Shown piece by piece: positions 385-32,184 of a stretch of DNA of 34,537 nt (position 1 is its first letter; the number at the start of each line of letters is the position of its first letter). The stretch lies in assembly GCF_001194135.2 (NCBI RefSeq), contig NC_068985.1, positions 126,421,086 through 126,455,622 of the forward strand. Direction: 5' to 3'. A program made the position numbers and the translations under genes. Origin of the DNA: Octopus bimaculoides (lineage: Eukaryota). The notes under the pieces were generated by a model, which made no database searches, had not been told where the DNA came from, and saw nothing but the letters and a program-made list of their open reading frames with translations.

Positions 385-610
385 TTTAAATGCACCCTTG
401 TCTTGACTTCTTCGGATGATTGTGAACAAGCATCGCCACCATACAAGCACCATTGTTCATTTCTGGTCATCCAAGAAAAACATGTCTCATCATGGGGAAA
501 CAGGTAGAGGTTGGTGACAGGAAGTGCATCCAGTTGTAGAAAAAAACCTGCTGCAACAAATTCTAGCTGACATATGCAAGCATAGAGAAAGTGGGCATCA
601 AATGATGATG
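385..610 (+). mobile_element. RTE-tail-type interspersed repeat ending in (GAT)n
   Basis: GGAAGTGCATCCAGTTGTAGAAAA...GCAAGCATAGAGAAAGTGGGCATCAAATGATGATG. The same motif family occurs at 6315-6468 (-), 7260-7550 (+) and 9955-10015 (-). Confidence 0.65.
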
Positions 611-895
611 TGTTGTCTCTTATTAATGTAGTGACTGTAACTAATCCTGCATCTGGAGTACTTTGCCAAAGTAGTGTTGTTGTCATTGTTGTTGATGTTG
701 GTGTTGGTGGTCAGTTTTGCCTGTTTAATATGGCTGCTACTAGTCTTGCATGTCTTAGTTACTTTAGCATAGCATTTGTGTTGCTGCTGCTTTTATTGTT
801 TAGCATTCAAGTAAGCTCTTATTGAGCAGATTCCTGAGCTAAATCATTCAAGCTATAACCATATTACCAGCCTTCATGTTTTTTTGTGTTTATGT

Positions 896-933
<38 letters not shown>

Positions 934-1270
934 AGATATGATATACTCCAAACTTCATTATCCTATGTATTTTTAACTTTAAGGAAATTTGCCTCTTATT
1001 TCTTGCACATCTTATGACCACATAGAGGCTCTCACTGATCGTTACTGCCACTGCTGCTGGGGACAGGGATGAGGATGGGCTGAATATTTTCATGGTATAA
1101 ATTATAGCCTAACAAATTCAGATCATAAACGTGGATTAGCCAAAATAGATAAGGTACCAGACAACCAAGCAAGAGGTCACCAGTTCATGTCATGTCACCA
1201 GTACTGCATCATATCTATGGCCAAAAAACTTATACCTGAACAGTCAAGTTCATTCAGCTGCAACTATGTG

Positions 1271-1473
1271 CCACAGGTTCGTATTACTCATTACCTACCA
1301 CAGGTTTATGTTACTAGATATCACAAGCTGGTATTACTAAATGCTACAGACTGGTCTTACACTCACTTAGTACCACAGGCTGGTATTACTTGCTGGTTAT
1401 CATAAATGGAGTTAGTAGGTTTCACAGGCTACATGCAAGATGGTTTTACCAAATATCACGGGTTGGTATTACT
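1271..1473 (+). repeat. Cryptic degenerate minisatellite, core CACAGGYTGGTATTACT
   Basis: Units start at about 1271, 1298, 1321, 1344, 1373, 1422 and 1456. Confidence 0.7.
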
Positions 1474-3469
1474 AACTAGTGTAAACAGTGTTAAAGAGTT
1501 AATACAGGGATTTGTTGGTTTGTAGAGCTAAATCTAATACCACATTCTCATATAAAAAAAATCTTCTTATGATAGATCAGTATTGTACCCAAGGAAAGGT
1601 CTGTTTTGCATTTACTTAACACCACAGAAAGAAGTAGTGACCCCAGTTTTTGAGATTTGGAAAGAGGAGTAATAGATACAACCCTTTGTAAATATGGTCA
1701 AACAATCATGTAACAATCTGGTCTGATTCAGATTCATATGTTACACTTTATCACACAGTCGCTTGTTGAGAAACAAAGCACTTGACCCAGCCTGTCTTGC
1801 AAAAGATGCAGCAAAATCATAAGGGTGTTGACCAAAATGTTTTGAGGGTCTGATTACAACCCTTTACATTCTGAGTTTAAATTTTTGCTGAGACTGTGTT
1901 TATCAACTGTTCTCTCCCACACAAATTCAAGACCTTATGCCTGTTTTGCCTGTTTTGCCTCTTTTCATTCAGAGTTCAAATCCTACTAAAGTCAACTTTA
2001 CCTTTCGTTCTTTTGAAATTGATAAAATAAAGCACCAGTCAAATACTAGAATAGATCTAATTGCCTCCCCTCTATATATATATATGCACAATAGATTATT
2101 GGTAGATTTAATTGATGAGCCCACTTCTCTCTAATTTCTCACCTTGTACCTATGTAAGAAATCCTTGTTTGCACTAACATATTGCTGAAGATCGAGTCTT
2201 TGGACTCACACGTACTATGTTAATTCCTTCTAAGTTGTTGATTAATTGAAAATAAGTTACATAGAGTAATCAAAAGAGAGTATCTGAAAGTTGAGATGGT
2301 CATGGTTGTTGGAACGTCTTTGATCTTAGATGTGACATAAAACTAAACTGCTGCAATGCAAACAGACCTAGGTGTGGTTCACATGCAGATTTCATACTAT
2401 CTTCTGTCATCATTTAGCCTTAATTTAGGATTTGTCGAGCAGACTCATGAAAGGCATTCCAGCCATGACTGCCCCATCTTTTATTGTGATATAACGTATA
2501 CTGACCTAAATAAATCATTGTATCTTTTTTTTTCTTTTTTAAGTGAGAGACTAATTCAACGGAGATTTAGCTGTTATTGCTAGCTTGTTGACTATGCGTG
2601 TAGATGCTACCTCACTGGATTGTGTCCGCTGCTTAAATAAATACTGCCTCCCTTCTCGCACAAGAGATTATTAATTAAGAATGTATCTTCCAAGTATTGC
2701 TAACTATTTTTTTTGCCTCTATTGAACTGCATGATATTCTCCTCTTAAAATGTATTGCACCCAACTGTAAAGTACATGGTATCTGTTCTTTGTAAATATA
2801 TATTGTCTTCTTTACTTTAATTCATTATTTGATTAGAAAGCATGACATTGCATGTTTTATTTCAAATTTTGATGTGTTTAAAGATATTTAGAAAATACAA
2901 TGGAAAGTCAGCATCTTGTTAAATAACCTAACAAATTAGCCATTTATGTCTTGTCATCACAACCACATGTTTTTGTGACCAAGGCACTCAGTTCCCAACA
3001 GCTCAGTTTACCTAGCTGAAAATAGGTACTCTGTCATGATGTAATTCCTCACAATGGACAGCAACATCATAGTAAAATTCATCAAGTGATCTGTTGGTTT
3101 GCGCAGCTAAGTTCAATTCCTCCACTAGAAACATTATGTCTATTAGTCAAGTATCCTATCCAGGAATAGTTTTATCTTTCACCTGTTTAACACAACACAA
3201 ATCAGTGATTATCAACAGCCCTGTGAATTTGTTAAAAGAAATTATATGTATTGCATTTACTGAAGAAATTTCTGAGCTAAAAGTCCAATATAAAGAGAGA
3301 ACATAGAATCAACAACACCCTCGTTATTCTTATCATCACTCTTCTTGTTGAAGTTGGTCCTCTACAGCAATATACTCGAGTTACTTGTTCCTTCACTTAT
3401 GCATGAGTACCACAAAGGAATATGACTCATCTCAAATAGGATATAGATATATATTCGACAAAATATTGG

Positions 3470-3865
3470 TTTCAAATTTTGGCACAAGGCCAGCAATTTC
3501 AGAGGAGGGGGAAAATCAATTACATTGACCCCAGTGTTCAACTGGTACTTATTTCATTGCAGCATTTGAAGTCCAAATGTAGGGTCAGAAGAAATGCTGC
3601 AGTTTACCTCTGCAGTGATGATTCTGCCAGTTCACTGTTTTACTTTGACAAAATATTGGTTTCAGATTTTGGCACAAGGCCAGCAATTTCAGAGGAGGGG
3701 GAAAATCAATTACATTGACCCCAGTGTTCAACTGGTACTTATTTTATTGACCCTGAAAGAATAAAAGCAAAGTCAATCCTAGCAGCATTTGAACTCAGAA
3801 GCTGGAAGAAATGCTGTCAGGCATTTCTTCCAGTCTGGTAACAGTTATGCCAGCTTACTGCCTTA
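3470..3865 (-). mobile_element. Two tandem SINE family A copies
   Basis: GGCACAAGGCCAGCAATTTC...GACCCCAGTGTTCAACTGGTACTTATTT occurs twice with a 190 bp period. Confidence 0.85.
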
Positions 3866-3907
3866 GTTTCGACAAATTATTAACGAGAAATTATCTGAAG
3901 TGATACA

Positions 3908-4080
3908 TGCATGGCTTTGTTTAAAAATTTTTCTTCAAAACCACATGGTTTTTAGTTCAATATTAGTTCATAGCATCTTAGGCAAATGCCTTCTTCCATT
4001 ACTCAGGCAGACCAAATCCTTGTAAATGAAACTTGACAGATGGAAACTGTGAAGAAGCCCATCAGATGTATGTATGTGTG
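3908..4080 (+). mobile_element. Degraded SINE family B, 5' half
   Basis: CCACATGGTT...CTTAGGCAAATGCCTTCT...GATGGAAACTGTGAAGAAGCCC. Confidence 0.65.
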
Positions 4081-5838
4081 TATTGAGGTTTGATTGCAAA
4101 AGTCAGTGTCAAATGAAAGTAATTTATTTATTGTTTTGTTTTTTCCCCGTCATTTTAATCTATCTTGGATAAATCTCTTTATGTCTGGTTAACTTTGTCT
4201 TCCAGCTACCTCTTAGGTTGATGAATTAAACACCTCTCACTAGTATTGAGAGGGATACATCAACAAAATCTTTGACAATACTAACCCCCCAGTCTGATCA
4301 CAGTCCAGTCACTGAAATCAGAAAATTAGTTAGCTACACAAAATGTAATGGCTGAAATTGAGAAATTTTTATTTTCAAGGATTATAATCCAGTAATTCCT
4401 TCAAAGTAAAACTAAATATATTTGTCTATAATGTACAAAAAAAGAACACATATATATGGTATCATGTGTGATTTTAATGTATTCACTTTCTAATTACCCA
4501 GTATTTTCTACTTAAATGGAATATTTTAATCATTCTGTGGGTATTTGGTGTGTTGTTTTTTTCATAATATCTCATCTTTTTACATATGTTGTGTTCTTTG
4601 TTTAACTGTTTCAGTCTACTCTGCATGAATGCACTGTACTCCCAGGAGTAAATTTTTTTTTTTTTGATAAGGTTTCACATCTCTTAGATATACATGTGTG
4701 TGTTTATGTGTATAATTCTCCCTGTTTGTCTAGACATGATGTTTTATATCAAATTATATGCCCAATCTCATCTATTCATACTTCCCTCTGTGTAAGTGTA
4801 TTGCATATAACATTCTGTCTTTTCACAGCATCTCTTGTGTAAGTATATAATCACCTCTCTTTGCTAACTTGCCTCACTCTAAATGTAAGGGAAACAAGAA
4901 ATATTTTTGACCAAATCAATCCCAATATTTCAGTAGTATTTATTTTATTGCACCTAGCGAGATGATAGGGAAACTCAACATTGGTGAACCTCTAACCTGA
5001 ACCTGTGAGAATATCAAACATCAAAGAAGACACTGGAAACATCCAACATGAGTTTTCAAAGATCTAGTATCATGTTGGAACAAATGTATTTTGGAAGAAT
5101 TTAACAATAAATACATGCAGGTTATGAATATTATTAGCTGAAAAGTTAAGGAATTACACAGACCTAACTGTTGAGCTAAAAGTATTGTAGTTATTAGGGA
5201 ATGTGCCCCATCAATCTAATTAGATATATACAGTTTTCTCTCTTAACATCATTGCTCCACACACCCCTAAATCATGAGCAGCACTCAACAAGAGCCTTCA
5301 TATATGCTCCAATTATTGGGTCTTGTTGCCAAGGATCCTTAACATGGCATCTCAACAACNNNNNNNNNNTTCTTTTCAGTACCAGAAGAGGACATGTCTG
5401 ATTTTTTTTTTTTTTTTTTTTTGCCAATAGACCCTTTTCATGATGCAGTTTAAGATGTCTTTGTGTGCATGTTACTGCAGCATCATTCCAGATGCCAGAA
5501 CAAATCTTTGTGGTTGTTCTTTGCTTGAGCTTTGTAGAGTATCAATTATTGCTTATAAAACCTATTAACGTTGCACCTTGCTCCAGATCCCACAAGTAAA
5601 AAGAAAAGAAAAAAAACTAGCTCCACCAGAACAATACACAACCACTTCTGGAAAAATATTGATAGATTCCATATAAGGATAGACACTGTACATTGTACAA
5701 AACAGCAATAATGGAATCTGTAAATTTTATTGGAACATTCTCACCATTTTTAAGCATGTTTTCCAAAATGTACATATTTTTTCTTCTTTCTTTTGTTCCT
5801 GATATCTCTCAAATGATGAGCAACAACAGCAATAATTA

Positions 5839-6697
5839 ATCCTTTCTACTATAGGCACAAGGCCTGAAATTGTAGGGAAGGGGTTAAGTTGAGTACATGA
5901 ACCCCAGTGTTTCATTGGTACTTAATTTCTCAACCCCAAAAGGATGAAAGGCAAAGTCAACCTTGGCAAAATTTGAACTCAAAATGTAAAGACGGACAAA
6001 ATGTCACTAAGCATTTCATCCAGTGTGCTAACAATTCTGCCAGCTCACCACCTTAACAACAACAATAATAATTCTTTCAAAATTTGGCCCAAGGCTGGCA
6101 ATTTAAGGGCACTGGGGCAAGTTGGTTACATCAAATACAATATGTGACTAGTATTTATTTTATCAACCCTGAAAGAATAAAAAGCAAAGTTGACTTTGGT
6201 GAGATTTTTGCTCACAACCTAGAGACCCAGAAGAAATGTTGCTATGATTTTTTATTTTTTTTTTTTATTTTTTTGTGATGTGCTAAAGATTCTGTCAACT
6301 CACTGACTTAACAGCAACATCATCATCATCGATTAACGTCCTCCTTCCATGCTGGCATGGGTTGGACGGTTTGACAGGAGCTGGCCAGGCAGGAGCCTGC
6401 ACCAGACTTCTGTGTCTGTTTTGACATGGTTTCTATGGCTGGATGCCCTTCCGAACACCAACCACCCTGCAGATAATAATAATAATCTTCCTACTGTAGG
6501 CAAAAGGCCTGACATTTGGGGGAGGGATCTAGTTGGTTACATTATAACAGTGCTGTAGTGGTACTTATTTTATCTACCCCAAAAGGATAAAAGACAAAGT
6601 TGACTTCAGTGGAACTTGAACTCAGAATGTGAAAATGGACAAAATGCCACTAAGCATTTTATCCAGTGTGCTAATGATTCTACCATTTCACCACTTT
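5839..6697 (-). mobile_element. Three SINE family A copies in the same orientation (about 5839-6054, 6071-6310, 6485-6697), CpG-decayed
   Basis: Reverse complement of the family A core (ACCCCAAAAGGATGAAAGGCAAAGTCAACCTTGGC...), separated by AAT/AAC tracts and one other repeat. Confidence 0.85.
6315..6468 (-). mobile_element. RTE-tail-type repeat with (GAT)n end
   Basis: + strand CATCATCATCGATTAACGTCC...CCATGCTGGCATGGGTTGGACGG...GGCTGGATGCCCTTCC...ACCAACCAC. Confidence 0.75.
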
Positions 6698-6794
6698 AGC
6701 AATGCCTTGTCTCTTTTGTCCACCAGGACCATGAGGTGGATTGACAAATCTTGTGTCTCTTAAATACAATGCCTATTAGCACAACTTTCACTCA

Positions 6795-6915
6795 TGGAAA
6801 GGTTCCTTTATTATCAGCATTGGTGAAATAAGTATCAGTTTTGTGCTGGGGTTGATGTAACCAACTCGCCCCTTCCCCACAAATTTCAGGCCTTGTGCCT
6901 AGAATAGAAAGGATT
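6795..6915 (+). mobile_element. SINE family A, 3' half
   Basis: Ends AAATTTCAGGCCTTGTGCCTAGAATAGAAAGG(ATT)n. Confidence 0.8.
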
Positions 6916-6939
6916 ATTATTATTTGTATTATTATTAGT

Positions 6940-7055
6940 GAGGACACATAGCTTAGTGGTTAGGATGTTGCACTCACAATCACAAGATCATGGTTTCAAT
7001 TCCTAGACCAGGTGGTACACTGTGTCCTTCAGCAAAACACTTCATCTGTGATCAC
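6940..7055 (+). mobile_element. SINE family C head, CpG-decayed
   Basis: GAGGACACATAGCTTAGTGGTTAGG...GGTTTCAATTCCTAGACCAGG...TGTGTCCTTCAGCAAAACACTTCAT. Confidence 0.7.
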
Positions 7056-8079
7056 TTCAACACCTGATGTGTGGTGCACCATGCAGCTGCTCAGGCAATG
7101 CCGCTTTGATAGAAGGAGTAGCTTATGCACAGCACATGCATTTTATCACTCTAACCAATTTATGCAGGTCATTCTGCAAAAAGCTGAACACTCATATATT
7201 GTCTTCAATATGAGAGTCCATTATTATTATTATTATTATTATTAATACATTCCATAAAATGACTGGCAAATGAAGTGAGTCAATGTATTGTGGAAAGAAC
7301 TCTTGGACAAGACAACCATGCTGACATCAAAATAAAATACATCCATTATACTCGGTAAAGAGATTTGTATAAGGATGGGTATTCAACCATATAAACAATG
7401 CAAAATGAAACATATATGAGTAAAACAATGTCTGGTCCCCACAAAACTTCTATGAGATCAGTAACTCTAAATAAGAACTGACTATGATGACCAGTCCAGA
7501 TGACCTCAGCATGAAAAACTAACATAATATGATATTGATGCTGATGGTTATCACAATAAAAGCAGCTATAGTGATAATCAACAGACTACGTTTTAGCAGT
7601 GGTCAACATCATAAAGTTGTCATCAATTATAGCTTAACAATGGAAAACCTACTCCACTTAAACAGTTGATTTCATATGGGAGAAAAAAACACAAGAGATT
7701 AGTTCCCTCTAGAGAAAGTATCCTACTCAGTCCCTACAACATGTCTTTGAGCAAGGTTTGACTCATCACTCTGCTGGTATCCTAGCCATTCTCCAAATAC
7801 TAAAGTCCAAAGACCTGTCTCGAATCTACATTTTCCTTCATTCATTGTCAATTATTATCTTGAATATTTCCAGTACATTATGATCTGTCTTTTTTTTTTT
7901 CTTTCCTTTTCAATTCTTCCTCTCTCTTTCACTGTATTTTTCTTTTTGCAGATATTTTTTTAAGAGATGATGTTTGAGTGGGATGGAGGCAACAGACAGA
8001 TGCATTTAAAAGCTATTTGTCTTGTGATGTCTCATAATGATGATACAGCTATTACTAATGATGATGATGATTTCTTACA

Positions 8080-8430
8080 GAGGTACAAGACCAGTCATTT
8101 GGAAGGAAGGGAACTATCAATGATATCAATTGACACTAATACTTACTTCAGCCATTTATCCACCCTGGACCAATGAAAACTAAAGTTGTCCCCGGTGGGA
8201 TGTGAACTCAGGATGTAAAAAGCTGTAACCAAAAACTACAAGACATTCTGCCAAACTTTCAAATGATTTTACTAATAAAACAAATAGTTGTTTCTAATGT
8301 AGGTACAAGGCCAGAAATTTGAGGAGAGGGGTAAATAGCTCAAATTAGCACCAGTGCTTGACTAGTGCTTTATTTTGTCAATCCTAAGAGGATGAAAGGC
8401 AAAGTTGAACTTGGAATATTAGAAGCTGGA
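8080..8430 (-). mobile_element. Two degraded SINE family A copies
   Basis: AAAGTTGTCCCCGGTGGGATGTGAACTCAGG and AGGATGAAAGGCAAAGTTGAACTTGG cores. Confidence 0.6.
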
Positions 8431-9034
8431 ATCAAGGAACAAAACACAGCTTTTGTCTTCCCATAATGAAAATTAATCTTAAGTTTCCAACAAGGAAACA
8501 CAAAAATAGTGGGGGGAAACATTTTCATTCGTATAATTCATTTACCAAGTTTATTCTTAGGTTTATAATAAAATTACAATGAAATTTAAATAATGATAAT
8601 AATTATAATAATACTAATAATTCAGAAATATATTTATGTATTATCATACTTTGAAAAGATGATTGTGACATTTTTGTCATAAAACAAAGACAACCTCAAT
8701 AGTCATTCAATAAAATTCTTGTGACATCAAAAACATACAATGCTCGCTGATAAGAATAAATATTCTAAAATGGATTGAGAAATTCAAAGCATTTATTTGG
8801 TCTGATAGTAGGACGCCTATCATATCTACAGGATATGCGAGTTTGAGTCTTATGGGCAGCCGTCAACATTTTCTGTCCAAAAGGATTTTTAACCCAGAAT
8901 TTATATGCTATTATCTATAGCTTTATGTGCTTTTATGTGTGTATATGTAGCAATATGTTACATGATTATTGAAGTTGTTTATGATATATCCTTGATGTAT
9001 TTGATTGCTTCATTAGTATCAAATATGTATATAA

Positions 9035-19535: not shown

Positions 19536-19579
<44 letters not shown>

Positions 19580-19586
19580 GTTATTA

Positions 19587-19679
<93 letters not shown>
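19523..19679. repeat. (CAT)n/(ATT)n microsatellite running into a gap
   Basis: Direct reading. Confidence 0.98.
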
Positions 19680-19872
19680 NNNNNNNNNNNNNNNNNNNNN
19701 NNNNNNNNNNNNNNNNNNNNNNNNNNNNNNNNNNNNNNNNNNNNNNNNNNNNNNNNNNNNNNNNNNNNNNNNNNNNNNNNNNNNNNNNNNNNNNNNNNNN
19801 NNNNNNNNNNNNNNNNNNNNNNNNNNNNNNNNNNNNNNNNNNNNNNNNNNNNNNNNNNNNNNNNNNNNNNNN

Positions 19873-20328
19873 CCCATCATAACTACCCGTCTGATAAGGG
19901 TACACCAGACACATGCATCACAACCATATGTGCGCGACATGGTGATCTCATATCAAGATAAACAGCGCGTTACCTTGCAGGTGGGGCCCAGTTAGAATTT
20001 TCTTCAGGTCGAGTGGCCCATCCCGCTGAAAAGGTCCCTGAATAAGGTTTGTTTAAGGATCTTGAGCAAAACACCCATCTTTCCAAAGGTGAATTATTCA
20101 AACCCCAAAGANNNNNNNNNNATCCAAACCCCAAAGAATTCCTCTCAACACATGGCTATGATGCTCCCGCATTACTTGTGTTTGTGATCTGAAATGCACA
20201 TATTGTCGGCCACTAAGGGACATGCTCAACTGGTTATGGTCAAACAACTGACAAGAAAGTCTGTAGTATTGTGCAGAATATTTACTGTAGCCCATCTTTT
20301 ATACCAAGACAAAGCAATTTACACGATT
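19873..20328. mobile_element. Non-coding interspersed repeat embedded between (ATT)n tracts (possible 3' UTR or non-autonomous derivative of a TAA-targeting element)
   Basis: Non-coding ~450 bp block with (ATT)n on the right and, across a gap, a long (ATT)n on the left. I recall it as a frequent octopus repeat; this is unverified. Confidence 0.4.
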
Positions 20329-20367
20329 ATTATTATTATTGTCGATATTATTATTATTAATATTATT

Positions 20368-21316
<949 letters not shown>

Positions 21317-21662: not shown

Positions 21663-21764
<102 letters not shown>

Positions 21765-21766
21765 CA

Positions 21767-21919
21767 ATGTGGTAAGAAGCTTGCTTCTAAACCACATGGT
21801 TCTGGATTCACTTCCACTGCGTGGTACCTTGGGCAAGCGTCTTCTACTATAGCCTCGGGCCGATGAAAGCCTTGTTAATAGAATTGGTAGACGGAAACTG
21901 AAAGAATCCTGTTGTATAT

Positions 21920-23224: not shown

Positions 23225-23460
23225 TCTCACACACACACATAAATTATATATATGCTTAATTTAATACCCACAGTATTTAAACATGAGTTACTATGAGTTT
23301 CATGCTCTGAGAGTACAATAGTCGAACGAGCTTGTTTAGCATGCACAATCGTGCAATTTTTCAGGTTCAAAATAAAATCAAGTGTATGTTAAATGATATT
23401 TATATCTTGTTGGGTGGAGTACTATTTCGTTGATCCCACAAATAACGAAACAGTACACGA

Positions 23461-23484
23461 TAGCTAGCTAGCTAGCTAGAGAGA

Positions 23485-23556
<72 letters not shown>

Positions 23557-23650
23557 TGCATACATACATACATACGCACATACATATATTTTATACACAC
23601 GCACACACACACACACACTACACACAACACACACACACAAACACACATAT
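23461..23650. repeat. Compound microsatellite (TAGC)n-(GATA)n-(GACA)n-(CATA)n-(CA)n
   Basis: Direct reading. Confidence 0.97.
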
Positions 23651-24551
23651 ATAGTATAGTGTTCAGATATCCAGAATCTCTGGAAATATCAACATTCTGA
23701 ATTTTCAATTCATCTATTATTGTTGTTTATTATTAATATTTAATGTAATTCTGTCACAAAAATTAAAAATCAATTTAACGTAATCGGGATTTTCCTTCCT
23801 TGGATAAAAAAAATCCGGTAAATATATTAAACATTATTGAATATTAAAATCTATTATCTAAAAAGCTATTTGAGCGAATGAAAACATTTATTCACTGAAA
23901 ATTATTCGTTAATTTCTCTTTAGATAGCTGAATACAATAAACACAGGGAAATTATTGCTAATTGCTTAAATATGTTAAAATATGTTCCATATTCCATTAA
24001 AAAATATTCGCATTTTGCAAACAAATTCAAGCAATTTAAAAAAGAAAGACATTTGCGCATTTATGTAAATGTGCCGGAAATTTAAGAAATACTACGTTGA
24101 GAAATAAAACTTTCAAGTATAACGTAACAGATGTCTCCTTTGGTTAACGCGTAAATCGACGACCATTGAGACAGCTGCCAATAATTGTGCAGCAGTTTGA
24201 CTAAGTGTGGCGTCGTTATGGATGTCGATGTCGTAGGCAGCGACGGCATGAATTTATTAAGTAAATGAATACATTAGGACAAACTATTTTGGTCAGTTGA
24301 GCTGACCCGCTTACATAACATTTCATTTATTTCTTTTCTCTTTTTTTTTCTTGCTTTACTTTTTTCCTAAATTTTCTGCTGAACTGCTTTATGACAGTAA
24401 AGGTGTCTCTCAGAAATTGAACTCCGAATAATTCTACCACCAATATCAGGATCTCCTGATGAAAATACAATACAGAAATGGAGGTTTATGTACATACATA
24501 CATGTGTACCCACAATCATAAACATACATACATTCACGCACACACACACAC

Positions 24552-24554
<3 letters not shown>

Positions 24555-24604
<50 letters not shown>

Positions 24605-24612
24605 CATACATA
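24555..24612. repeat. (TACA)n microsatellite, 5' flank of R4-like copy 1
   Basis: Direct reading. Confidence 0.97.
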
Positions 24613-25411
24613 AACAACTGATGCAGACTTTGTGGACTTAACACTGAAGATATCATACACATCATAAGCAGAGGTCCGAAAATGTCATCCTGGTATTATC
24701 TACCGATGAGGCATGATGTTGCTAGGACACTCTATAATGAAATCCGTCGGAAGGATTATATCGAGGACACAGAAATAAGAACCCACAATATAGTAGAAGC
24801 CATAGCTACTTATAATAAAAAGGAGTACTGGTGGAATGTCCCAGTGAAGACCTCAATAAAATTTGAGCACAACAAACCTGATATAATGATTTGGGATAAA
24901 GAAGAGAAACTGTGTACAGTTGTGGAAATTAGCTGCCCAGCGGATATTAACATAAAGCTGAAGATCAATGAAAGGAGAATGCCTACGCTGAACTATTGAG
25001 AAATCTGTAGTTACTCCATGCAGACTACAAGTTCAGGTTTATACCTGTAATTATTGGGATTCTGGAATATGTAACACACTTCCTAAATACCAACCTTGAA
25101 AAATTAGGCTTCTCAAAACCAGAAAGGAGAAAGCTAATGCGAAGACTACACATTCAATCCATCACTGGAACTTTAAAAATCTGTAAAACTTTCCAGAAGT
25201 TTATCATTTAAATATATATGAGCTTATCTAGATATGCAACTATATGCATGAGAATACATGCATAAACAAAACATACAGATCTGCACATATACATACATAC
25301 AAAAATACCCAGTTGTTGATGTTGAAATTCCAATGAAGGAGCCTTGGATCTAGGTTAGAAACCGGTTCTTTCTCTATTGGCAGGAAATCTTGAAATAAAA
25401 CTGAATAATGA
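24613..25411 (+). mobile_element. 5'-truncated R4/Dong-like (RLE-type) non-LTR retrotransposon, copy 1: CCHC knuckle, restriction-like endonuclease and 3' UTR
   Basis: Translation gives CRLCGLNTEDIIHIISRG (degenerate CCHC), RHD motif (YYLPMRHDVAR), HNKPDIMIWD...VVEISCPADINI (PD-(D/E)xK-type RLE), and after a frameshift YKFRFIPVIIGILEY...ICKTFQKFII* (stop 25209-25211). The 3' UTR ends CTGAATAATGA, followed by (CATA)n. Confidence 0.85.
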
Positions 25412-25475
25412 CATACATACATACATACATACATACATACATACATACATACATACATACATACATACATACATA
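25411..25475. repeat. (ACAT)16 microsatellite between the two R4-like copies
   Basis: Direct reading. Confidence 0.97.
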
Positions 25476-25931
25476 AAACTGTGTACAGTTGTAGAAATCA
25501 GCTGCCCAGCGAAAAAAAAAAGCCTATGCTGAACTACTGAGGAATCTACAGCTACTCTATCCAGATTACAAATTCAGGTTTATACCTGTAATTATTGGGG
25601 CACTGGGATATGTAACACGTTTCCTAAATACCAAACTTGAGAAATTAGTCTTCTCAAAACCAGAGAGGGGAAAGCTAATTCGAAGACTAAAGATTCAACC
25701 TATCACTGGAACTGTAAACATCTGTAAACCGTTCCAGTTTATCATTTGACTATAGATGAGCGTGTCTAGACATGCAACTATACGCATAAGAATACATACA
25801 TAAAACAAGACATACAAATCTGCAAAAATACCCTGTTGGTGTTGAAATTCCAGTGAAGGGGCCTTGGATCTGGGTTAGAAACCGGTTCTTTCTCTATTGG
25901 CAAGAAATCTTGAAATAAATCTGAATAATGA
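25476..25931 (+). mobile_element. 5'-truncated R4/Dong-like element, copy 2 of the same family
   Basis: Starts AAACTGTGTACAGTTGTAGAAATCAGCTGCCCAGCG, matching copy 1 near 24908. Encodes AYAELLRNLQLLYPDYKFRFIPVIIGALGYV...FQFII*. Same 3' UTR and same CTGAATAATGA end before (TACA)n. Confidence 0.85.
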
Positions 25932-26064
25932 TATACATACATACATACATACATACATACATACATACATACGTACATATATATATGCATACATGCATAC
26001 ACATACATATACATATATACGTATAGATATGTATATATACACACACACATATACACATACATAC

Positions 26065-26106
<42 letters not shown>

Positions 26107-32101: not shown

Positions 32102-32103
<2 letters not shown>
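31905..32103 (+). mobile_element. SINE family B, 3' half (tail cut at CCAGCAT)
   Basis: (TG)n TTTGTCCCCC...CGCTTGACAACCGATGTTGGTG...AGAATAAGTACTGGGCTTACAAAG...GGTGGTGCTCCAGCAT. Confidence 0.85.
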
Positions 32104-32132
<29 letters not shown>

Positions 32133-32184
32133 TACACATATGCATATAAATATACATACATGCATACTATATAAAAAAACATTA

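Follow-up and report, generated by a model that had tools for sequence, protein, structure and literature searches.

Among long interspersed nuclear elements (LINEs), insertion into microsatellites has been described for Dong at (TAA)n, including a member from a snail, Waldo at (ACAY)n, Mino at (AC)n, Kibi at (TC)n and Koshi at (TTC)n (PMC3812793), as well as for Togen at (TG)n, which lies near NeSL and HERO, and for microsatellite-specific HERO families (PMC4640811). R4 and Dong elements carry a hepatitis delta virus (HDV)-like ribozyme at the 5′ end (PMC3774820). Here, we analysed a stretch of 34,537 nucleotides from Octopus bimaculoides (contig NC_068985.1, positions 126,421,086 to 126,455,622; hereafter the window), in which two LINE copies lie in head-to-tail tandem within a (CATA)n, or equivalently (ACAT)n, microsatellite. 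Of each only a 3′ fragment is left; both are dead and belong to a single octopus LINE family, and we consider it likely that they represent two old, independent 5′-truncated insertions of an element with reverse transcriptase (RT), CCHC zinc knuckle and restriction-like endonuclease (RLE), most probably of the Dong/R4 clade, that targets (CATA)n in a fixed orientation.

Repeat tracts and LINE copies in the window

By Tandem Repeats Finder (TRF) and by inspection of the sequence, the locus consists of (ACAT)n, copy 1, a perfect (ACAT)16, copy 2 and a degenerate (ATAC)n (Table 1), which confirms the alternation of repeat and copy, the identical 3′ ends and the 5′ junctions at CATA that a preliminary description of this DNA, made from its letters, had reported. 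The perfect tract both follows the 3′ end of copy 1 and precedes the 5′ end of copy 2, and the downstream tract comprises ∼10 good units before it decays into AT/AC-rich repeats. Copy 1 starts at ...catacata/AACAAC, and both copies end in CTGAATAATGA, followed directly by CATACATA after copy 1 and by TATACATA after copy 2, where the final A of each copy can be assigned either to the element or to the repeat. Since the window has four perfect (CATA) runs of at least four units, which cover 0.46% of it and of which three lie at copy junctions, an association of repeat and copies by chance is excluded within the window. A tblastn search returned no further copies of the family in its 34.5 kb.

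The two copies are 83–88% identical. In their alignment, the first base of copy 2 corresponds to position ∼295 of copy 1, and copy 2 has deletions of its own, one of 28 bp replaced by a run of A and two others of 3 bp and 19 bp. A third copy of the family is located on Octopus vulgaris chromosome OX597824.1 (L001), and a three-way alignment yields 14 private substitutions in copy 1, 24 in copy 2 and 23 in L001, with pairwise identities of 88.5% (copy 1 to copy 2), 87.9% and 86.4%. This star-like pattern, in which the window copies are no nearer to each other than to L001, is better explained by two insertions than by a local duplication, and together with the differing truncation points it argues for independent events. 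Independence had already been proposed in the preliminary description, and the private deletions of copy 2, the differing 5′ ends and the star-like divergence with L001 all speak for it. A local duplication would require that one insertion and its flanking repeat were duplicated through unequal crossing-over between CATA tracts and that the second unit then lost part of its length to deletion. While the perfect middle tract between degenerate outer ones and the slightly closer relationship of copies 1 and 2 (88.5%) than of either to L001 would fit such a history, the private counts leave no surplus of substitutions common to copies 1 and 2 against L001, their 5′ ends are not the same, and the same array layout is found elsewhere with different families (copies A and B in L023; copies 1 and 2 in L004, with ∼48% protein identity). 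On these three counts, we rejected local duplication as highly improbable.

Insertion target or 3′ tail

Junctions were surveyed in 17 copies from about eight related families, the relatives having been collected via proteins and through a scan of metagenome contigs. The related families are at 45–55% amino-acid identity, and the octopus family itself contributes only three informative copies; its members are few in the protein database, and an exact-pattern scan of JGI metagenomes for its 3′ end gave no match. Thirteen of the 14 readable 5′ junctions, including those of all seven 5′-truncated copies, abut the family's own repeat. The same repeat strand lies on the sense strand in every copy, the phase of the 3′ junction is fixed within each group (/ACAT or /CTTA), and all readable 3′ junctions fall in the repeat except those of L003 and L006, which are followed by 0–1 units. 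(CATA)n is typical of five families and (CTTA)n of the rest, and (CATA)n specificity extends beyond the octopus to four other families in ENA assemblies.

Within the (CATA)n group, tract lengths on the two sides of a copy can differ widely. L001, which is solitary and 5′-truncated, abuts (CATC)n(CATA)n at its 5′ junction and ends in CTGAATAATG/A, after which actgacatatatattt amounts to two units at most; a self-made tail cannot produce such a copy. Two further 5′-truncated copies have 49 units upstream and 0–1 downstream (L003, joined to the tract through a microhomology of 2 nt) and 19 upstream and 3 downstream (L022). In L022, a target-site duplication of 20 bp, ACATACATACATATATATTT, is found on both sides of the element and covers the last three units together with 8–10 bp of unique flank, so that the downstream units were target DNA and not a tail. 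Full-length members are the intact L023, with ∼95 units upstream and 15 downstream, and L024, which represents the young family of L022 (99.4% identical) at another locus and has 57 and 26. In L006, 10 units lie upstream and the copy then sits within an (AT)n next to them. The contig of L023 carries a copy of a different RLE-LINE family (428–4254) in tandem with the intact copy (4653–8542); it ends on the ∼390-bp (ACAT)n tract upstream of the latter, which the two have in common.

The (CTTA)n group shows comparable junctions. L004 comprises two tandem copies, the 4.7-kb element of L016 has the repeat at both contig ends, the 5′ junctions of L012 and L015 and the 3′ junction of L014 lie in the repeat, and L018 has (CTTA)3 at its 3′ end and a 5′ tract that passes from (CTTA)n through (CTCA)n to (CTGA)n. 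The remaining contigs are less informative, as L007–L009 (Logan contigs) end in a short interspersed nuclear element (SINE) just past the stop codon, and L010 and L011 hold an old copy without definable ends.

Because 5′ junctions lie in the repeat (13 of 14), 5′ tracts are long where 3′ tracts are short, and L022 carries a target-site duplication, we favour targeted insertion: the lineage appears to insert into particular four-base repeats, with (CATA)n as a target and not merely a tail, a view for which support is good in the lineage as a whole and moderate in the octopus family, with its three informative copies. The preliminary description had likewise taken (CATA)n as the target and the repeat as a mere tail should 5′ junctions prove to lie mostly outside it; L001 and the related families in other assemblies bear the former out, and the 5′ junctions, three of them from octopus-family copies, show the opposite of the latter.

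Were (CATA)n instead only a 3′ tail, made by slippage of the reverse transcriptase as in LINEs of the RTE, CR1 or L2 type, the array would have arisen by chance insertion or recombination into the tail of another copy, and no target would be recognized. The repeat does follow both window copies, the phase of the 3′ junction is constant, the 3′ untranslated region (3′UTR) holds an ACAT-rich stretch, the tract lies within a longer 3′ end in L003 and L005, so that the RNA can contain the repeat, and RTE elements with microsatellite tails are described as well known (PMC2887409, as cited in PMC9115989). What this model does not produce are solitary truncated copies with a long 5′ tract and almost no 3′ tract, as in L001, L003 and L022, in all of which the DNA upstream of the tract is not another copy, nor a duplication that, as in L022, reaches into unique flank and shows the downstream units to predate the insertion. 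Given the tract asymmetry of these three copies and the duplication in L022, the tail-only model was rejected as improbable.

Several points weigh against insertion into a specific repeat. (ACAT)n is a common repeat in the genomes concerned, and tract lengths shift after insertion, so that flank lengths are little guide to the original site. The sole exception among the 14 readable 5′ junctions, L005, has no 5′ tract and lies head to head with another LINE, and in L018 it is (CTGA)n rather than (CTTA)n that adjoins the 5′ end. Within the octopus family, two of the three informative junction sets come from a single array, and the fourth copy, L002, is an internal fragment whose 5′ flank is only a degenerate, ambiguous AC-rich stretch.

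Two observations concern the surroundings of these copies. At two unrelated loci (L001, 6000–6075; L006, 6300–6400), the repeat tract in front of the LINE copy is itself immediately preceded, on its 5′ side, by a tRNA-derived SINE on the minus strand. The O. bimaculoides gene model LOC106878562 (P0014; L002, 7710–8865) fuses C2H2 zinc-finger repeats to a fragment of the octopus LINE family, a fusion that is probably an annotation artefact.

Protein architecture, clade and a model of insertion

The conceptual translation of copy 1 covers the last ∼196 residues of the protein and is interrupted by an in-frame TGA (24619–24621), a frameshift near 24975 and a TAG (25018–25020). It is 44–73% identical to 17 database proteins (P0001–P0017), three of which are annotated in O. 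bimaculoides or O. vulgaris. The alignment with 10 relatives shows C-x2-C-x8-H of the knuckle, EYWWN, HNKPD, E.SCPAD and the invariant YLP.RHD to be kept in copy 1, motifs that make up a zinc knuckle and the PD-(D/E)xK core of a restriction-like endonuclease. In the knuckle, copy 1 reads CRLCGLNTEDIIHIISRGP and its relatives CRLCKSN.EDITHIISSCP, the fourth ligand being lost in copy 1 (SRGP versus SSCP of the relatives, codon 24670–24672); in alignment with R2, this stretch falls on the CRHC...H...C knuckle. Of the CCHC, RHD and RLE motifs that the preliminary description had listed as retained, RHD and KPD...E are indeed present, but the knuckle is CCH-R, with its last cysteine mutated. The C-terminal piece of copy 1 alone had no match in Pfam.

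Downstream of the coding remnant, the fold of the last 115 nt of the 3′UTR is not significant (z-score −0.62). The ACAT-rich stretch inside the 3′UTR (window 25270–25300, + strand; L001 6425–6470) varies in length between copies in the three-way alignment and may be an old captured target tract.

Table 1. Coordinates of the repeat tracts, the two LINE copies and the coding remnants of copy 1, numbered within the window.
Feature	Position	Strand	Basis and remarks
Upstream (ACAT)n tract, imperfect	24522..24612	+	TRF, 22.2 copies, 87% matches; 5′ flank of copy 1
Copy 1, dead 5′-truncated LINE, 799 bp	24613..25411 (end 25410/11)	+	Translations; tblastn in the window
End of the open reading frame in copy 1	24613-25211; stop TAA 25209-25211	+	Translations
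Zinc knuckle remnant, C-x2-C-x8-H-x3-(C mutated to R)	24622..24672	+	Aligned with relatives
Restriction-like endonuclease core	24709..24945	+	(Near-)invariant columns in the alignment of copy 1 with 10 relatives
RHD motif, in YLP.RHD	24709-24717	+	
KPD...E	24874-24927	+	HNKPD 24868-24882; VVEISCPAD 24919-24945
3′UTR of copy 1	25212-25411	+	Ends in CTGAATAATGA
Perfect (CATA)16 between the copies	25412..25475 (TRF: (ACAT)16.2, 25411-25475)	+	TRF, 100% matches; regex runs
Copy 2, dead, more strongly 5′-truncated, same family, 456 bp	25476..25931 (end 25930/31)	+	Alignments; tblastn
Downstream (ATAC)n tract	25932..26103 (TRF start 25931)	+	TRF; unit count; 3′ flank of copy 2

Elsewhere in the window, a composite microsatellite, (CTAG)n(ATAG)n(ACAG)n(ACAT)n(AC)n, at 23460–23650 and a (TATG)7 at 32103–32133 show that CATA-type tracts can exist without an adjoining element. 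An octopus SINE copy lies at 21763–21915, flanked by a (TC)n(TA)n array on one side and a (TG)n array on the other. The segment at 19538–20690, considered as a hidden (TAA)n-flanked Dong, was rejected as such: it is a pair of tRNA-derived SINEs with (ATT)n tails and assembly gaps, in which (ATT)47 and (ATT)35 arrays are accompanied by N runs at 19680–19873 and 20113–20122.

Full-length relatives (L023/P0181 and L005) have one long open reading frame (ORF) of ∼1,170 aa that comprises an N-terminal region, RT, CCHC and RLE. P0181, encoded by L023, has 1,126 aa as called and ∼1,169 aa when started from an upstream ATG, and the ORF of L005 is in two pieces, of 440 aa and 734 aa. In P0181 and P0035, which have the same C-terminal motifs as copy 1, Pfam identifies RVT_1 and zf-RVT. 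The best matches in the PDB are R2 proteins (9nl3, 9dou R2Tg, 8gh6 R2Bm), with E-values of 1e-14 to 1e-24 and including the knuckle/RH(D/N) region. Pfam assigns no domain to the ∼420 N-terminal residues of the full-length relatives (440-aa ORF of L005, P0181, P0039), and finds in these relatives neither an apurinic/apyrimidinic-type endonuclease (APE; Exo_endo_phos) nor N-terminal zinc-finger or Myb domains. To our knowledge, the absence of APE and of N-terminal zinc-finger/Myb DNA-binding domains is a trait of R4.

At the level of sequence, the family is an RLE LINE outside R2 proper. Its membership in R4/Dong is likely, as suggested by the order of the domains, by R2 as the nearest solved relatives, and by the abundance of Dong-R4 in O. 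vulgaris, where it is the second largest LINE group and makes up ∼90% of the RLE-LINE DNA: 92.7 Mb in 51 families, against 8.2 Mb for Hero, 1.9 Mb for CRE and 0.1 Mb for R2 (PMC13282606 and its supplement). Neither the database hits nor the protein clusters carry clade names. The same mechanism could belong to a microsatellite-targeting RLE LINE of another clade, either HERO, which is the main alternative, or an RLE lineage that has no name as yet. Specificity for microsatellites is described for some HERO families (PMC4640811), 14 Hero families are listed for O. vulgaris (PMC13282606, supplement), and the 5′ ends of L004, L005, L006, L012, L015, L016 and L023 gave no Rfam match to an HDV-like ribozyme, a class that such models often miss; these points would fit the other clade. 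Yet Dong-R4 is ∼11 times as abundant as Hero in O. vulgaris, the repeat library of O. bimaculoides holds a full-length Dong (PMC9115989), and DongBg, a relative of Dong, is known from another mollusc (PMC3812793), which leaves a different clade unlikely, if less so than the tail-only model. In full-length copies of three families (L023, 4653–4672; L016, 105–125; L015, 66–88), the repeat is directly followed by a small GC-rich hairpin and then GGAYGTG, a motif that L024 lacks; the 5′-terminal hairpins of the relatives had no Rfam ribozyme match, and their folding energy is not significant.

On the pattern established for R2 and Dong, an element of this kind would integrate into (CATA)n in a fixed orientation via target-primed reverse transcription, the protein nicking one strand of the repeat and priming reverse transcription from the 3′ end of the RNA. 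As judged from the 3′ junction, at which ...AATAATG/A of the element meets ...ACATACAT, the first nick would fall within the repeat. The second strand would be cut nearby and the often incomplete cDNA joined upstream, with its 5′ end rejoined to the repeat or just past its end, sometimes with 1–2 nt of microhomology or a target-site duplication. Repeat would thereby be left on both sides of each insertion, so that later ones could land next to it and give rise to repeat-copy-repeat-copy arrays.

We infer that the repeat is recognized by the protein. L003 (9072–9100) and L005 (9488–9512) have 18 nt in common (TTATTTGATWACGCAGGT) after the 3′ (ACAT)n tract, which are absent from the intact L023 (8543–8620) and for which 3′ transduction of tract and flank from one source copy would be the simplest reading. 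Even with these 18 nt behind its 3′ tract, L003 was inserted where a (CATA)50 tract ends, and it seems that the target is found by the protein, and not solely through a repeat-bearing RNA tail that pairs with it.

The 5′ tract is much longer than the 3′ tract in most copies that are solitary or terminal. Insertions may prefer the downstream edge of a tract, or the upstream tract may lengthen afterwards, and this asymmetry is the only hint in favour of the idea, put forward in the preliminary description, that the element might regenerate its own target and so seed (CATA)n tracts genome-wide. At one locus, covered by four ENA assemblies that are otherwise 99% identical (L018–L021, 3600–3995), the last block of the 5′ tract counts 56, 71, 156 and 172 units, and the 5′ tract there is extremely unstable. 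A bolder and rather doubtful reading is that of an RLE-LINE lineage, its sister families using (CATA)n or (CTTA)n, with a reader of tetranucleotide repeats that can quickly be re-targeted and is placed in a protein region without a known DNA-binding domain; the lineage would also shape its own target through insertion at the downstream edge of the tract, growth of the 5′ tract to hundreds of units and the carriage of repeat by read-through RNAs. If true, these elements would drive the origin and growth of tetranucleotide microsatellites in the genomes of cephalopods and other invertebrates.

Comparison with known systems

What is new here is the repeat target, while the kind of element is known, and the locus itself, with its two dead copies, is a modest finding. 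An (ACAT)n target is known for an APE-type lineage, and microsatellite targeting is known within the R4 clade for a different repeat. In the literature, including papers on octopus repeats, we found no (CATA)n- or (CTTA)n-specific R4/Dong family (Repbase and Dfam lie outside this search). The new target specificity put forward in the preliminary description holds in that no (CATA)n family of R4/Dong was found described, and has to be narrowed in that (ACAY)n and microsatellite targets were already known from Waldo and Dong and in that four other families reside in (CATA)n.

Target-specific LINEs are natural models for site-directed gene insertion, for which R2 is already used, and closely related RLE elements that differ in their four-base target would offer a compact system for the study of DNA reading and of switches in specificity. 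The tie of at least one family to (CATA)n would explain some of the tandem arrays of LINEs, as well as some microsatellite families with common flanks, and is relevant to marker design and assembly breaks.

Among the described elements, RTE and CR1/L2-type LINEs resemble those studied here in having a microsatellite directly after the 3′ end, but in them the repeat is 3′ only and 5′ junctions lie in unique DNA, whereas here truncated 5′ junctions are in the repeat. Togen and the microsatellite-specific HERO families are, like the present elements, RLE LINEs at microsatellites, but at other repeats and elsewhere in the RT tree. Waldo (WaldoAg1/2 and WaldoFs1, of the R1 clade) has an (ACAY)n target that includes (ACAT)n, i.e., (CATA)n (PMC3812793), but uses an N-terminal APE, while the present elements have a C-terminal RLE and no APE, so that the target they have in common would be convergent. 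R2 (R2Bm, R2Tg) shares with the present elements the RT, the CCHC knuckle and the RH(D/N)...PD...E endonuclease, and its target-primed reverse transcription at a specific repeated target is what we propose for them; it differs in its N-terminal zinc-finger and Myb domains and its 28S rDNA site, where the relatives of the octopus family have ∼420 N-terminal residues without a known domain and tetranucleotide repeats. Dong, of the R4 clade (Bombyx mori, Anopheles gambiae and Biomphalaria glabrata), likewise has a single ORF with RT, CCHC and RLE and is specific for a microsatellite, which it enters in a single orientation, with a member known from a mollusc (PMC3812793; PMC4640811). It carries a 5′ HDV-like ribozyme (PMC3774820), for which the relatives studied here gave no match in Rfam, and its target is (TAA)n, whereas the present elements occupy (CATA)n (in the window, L001, L003, L022, L023 and L024) and their sister families (CTTA)n.

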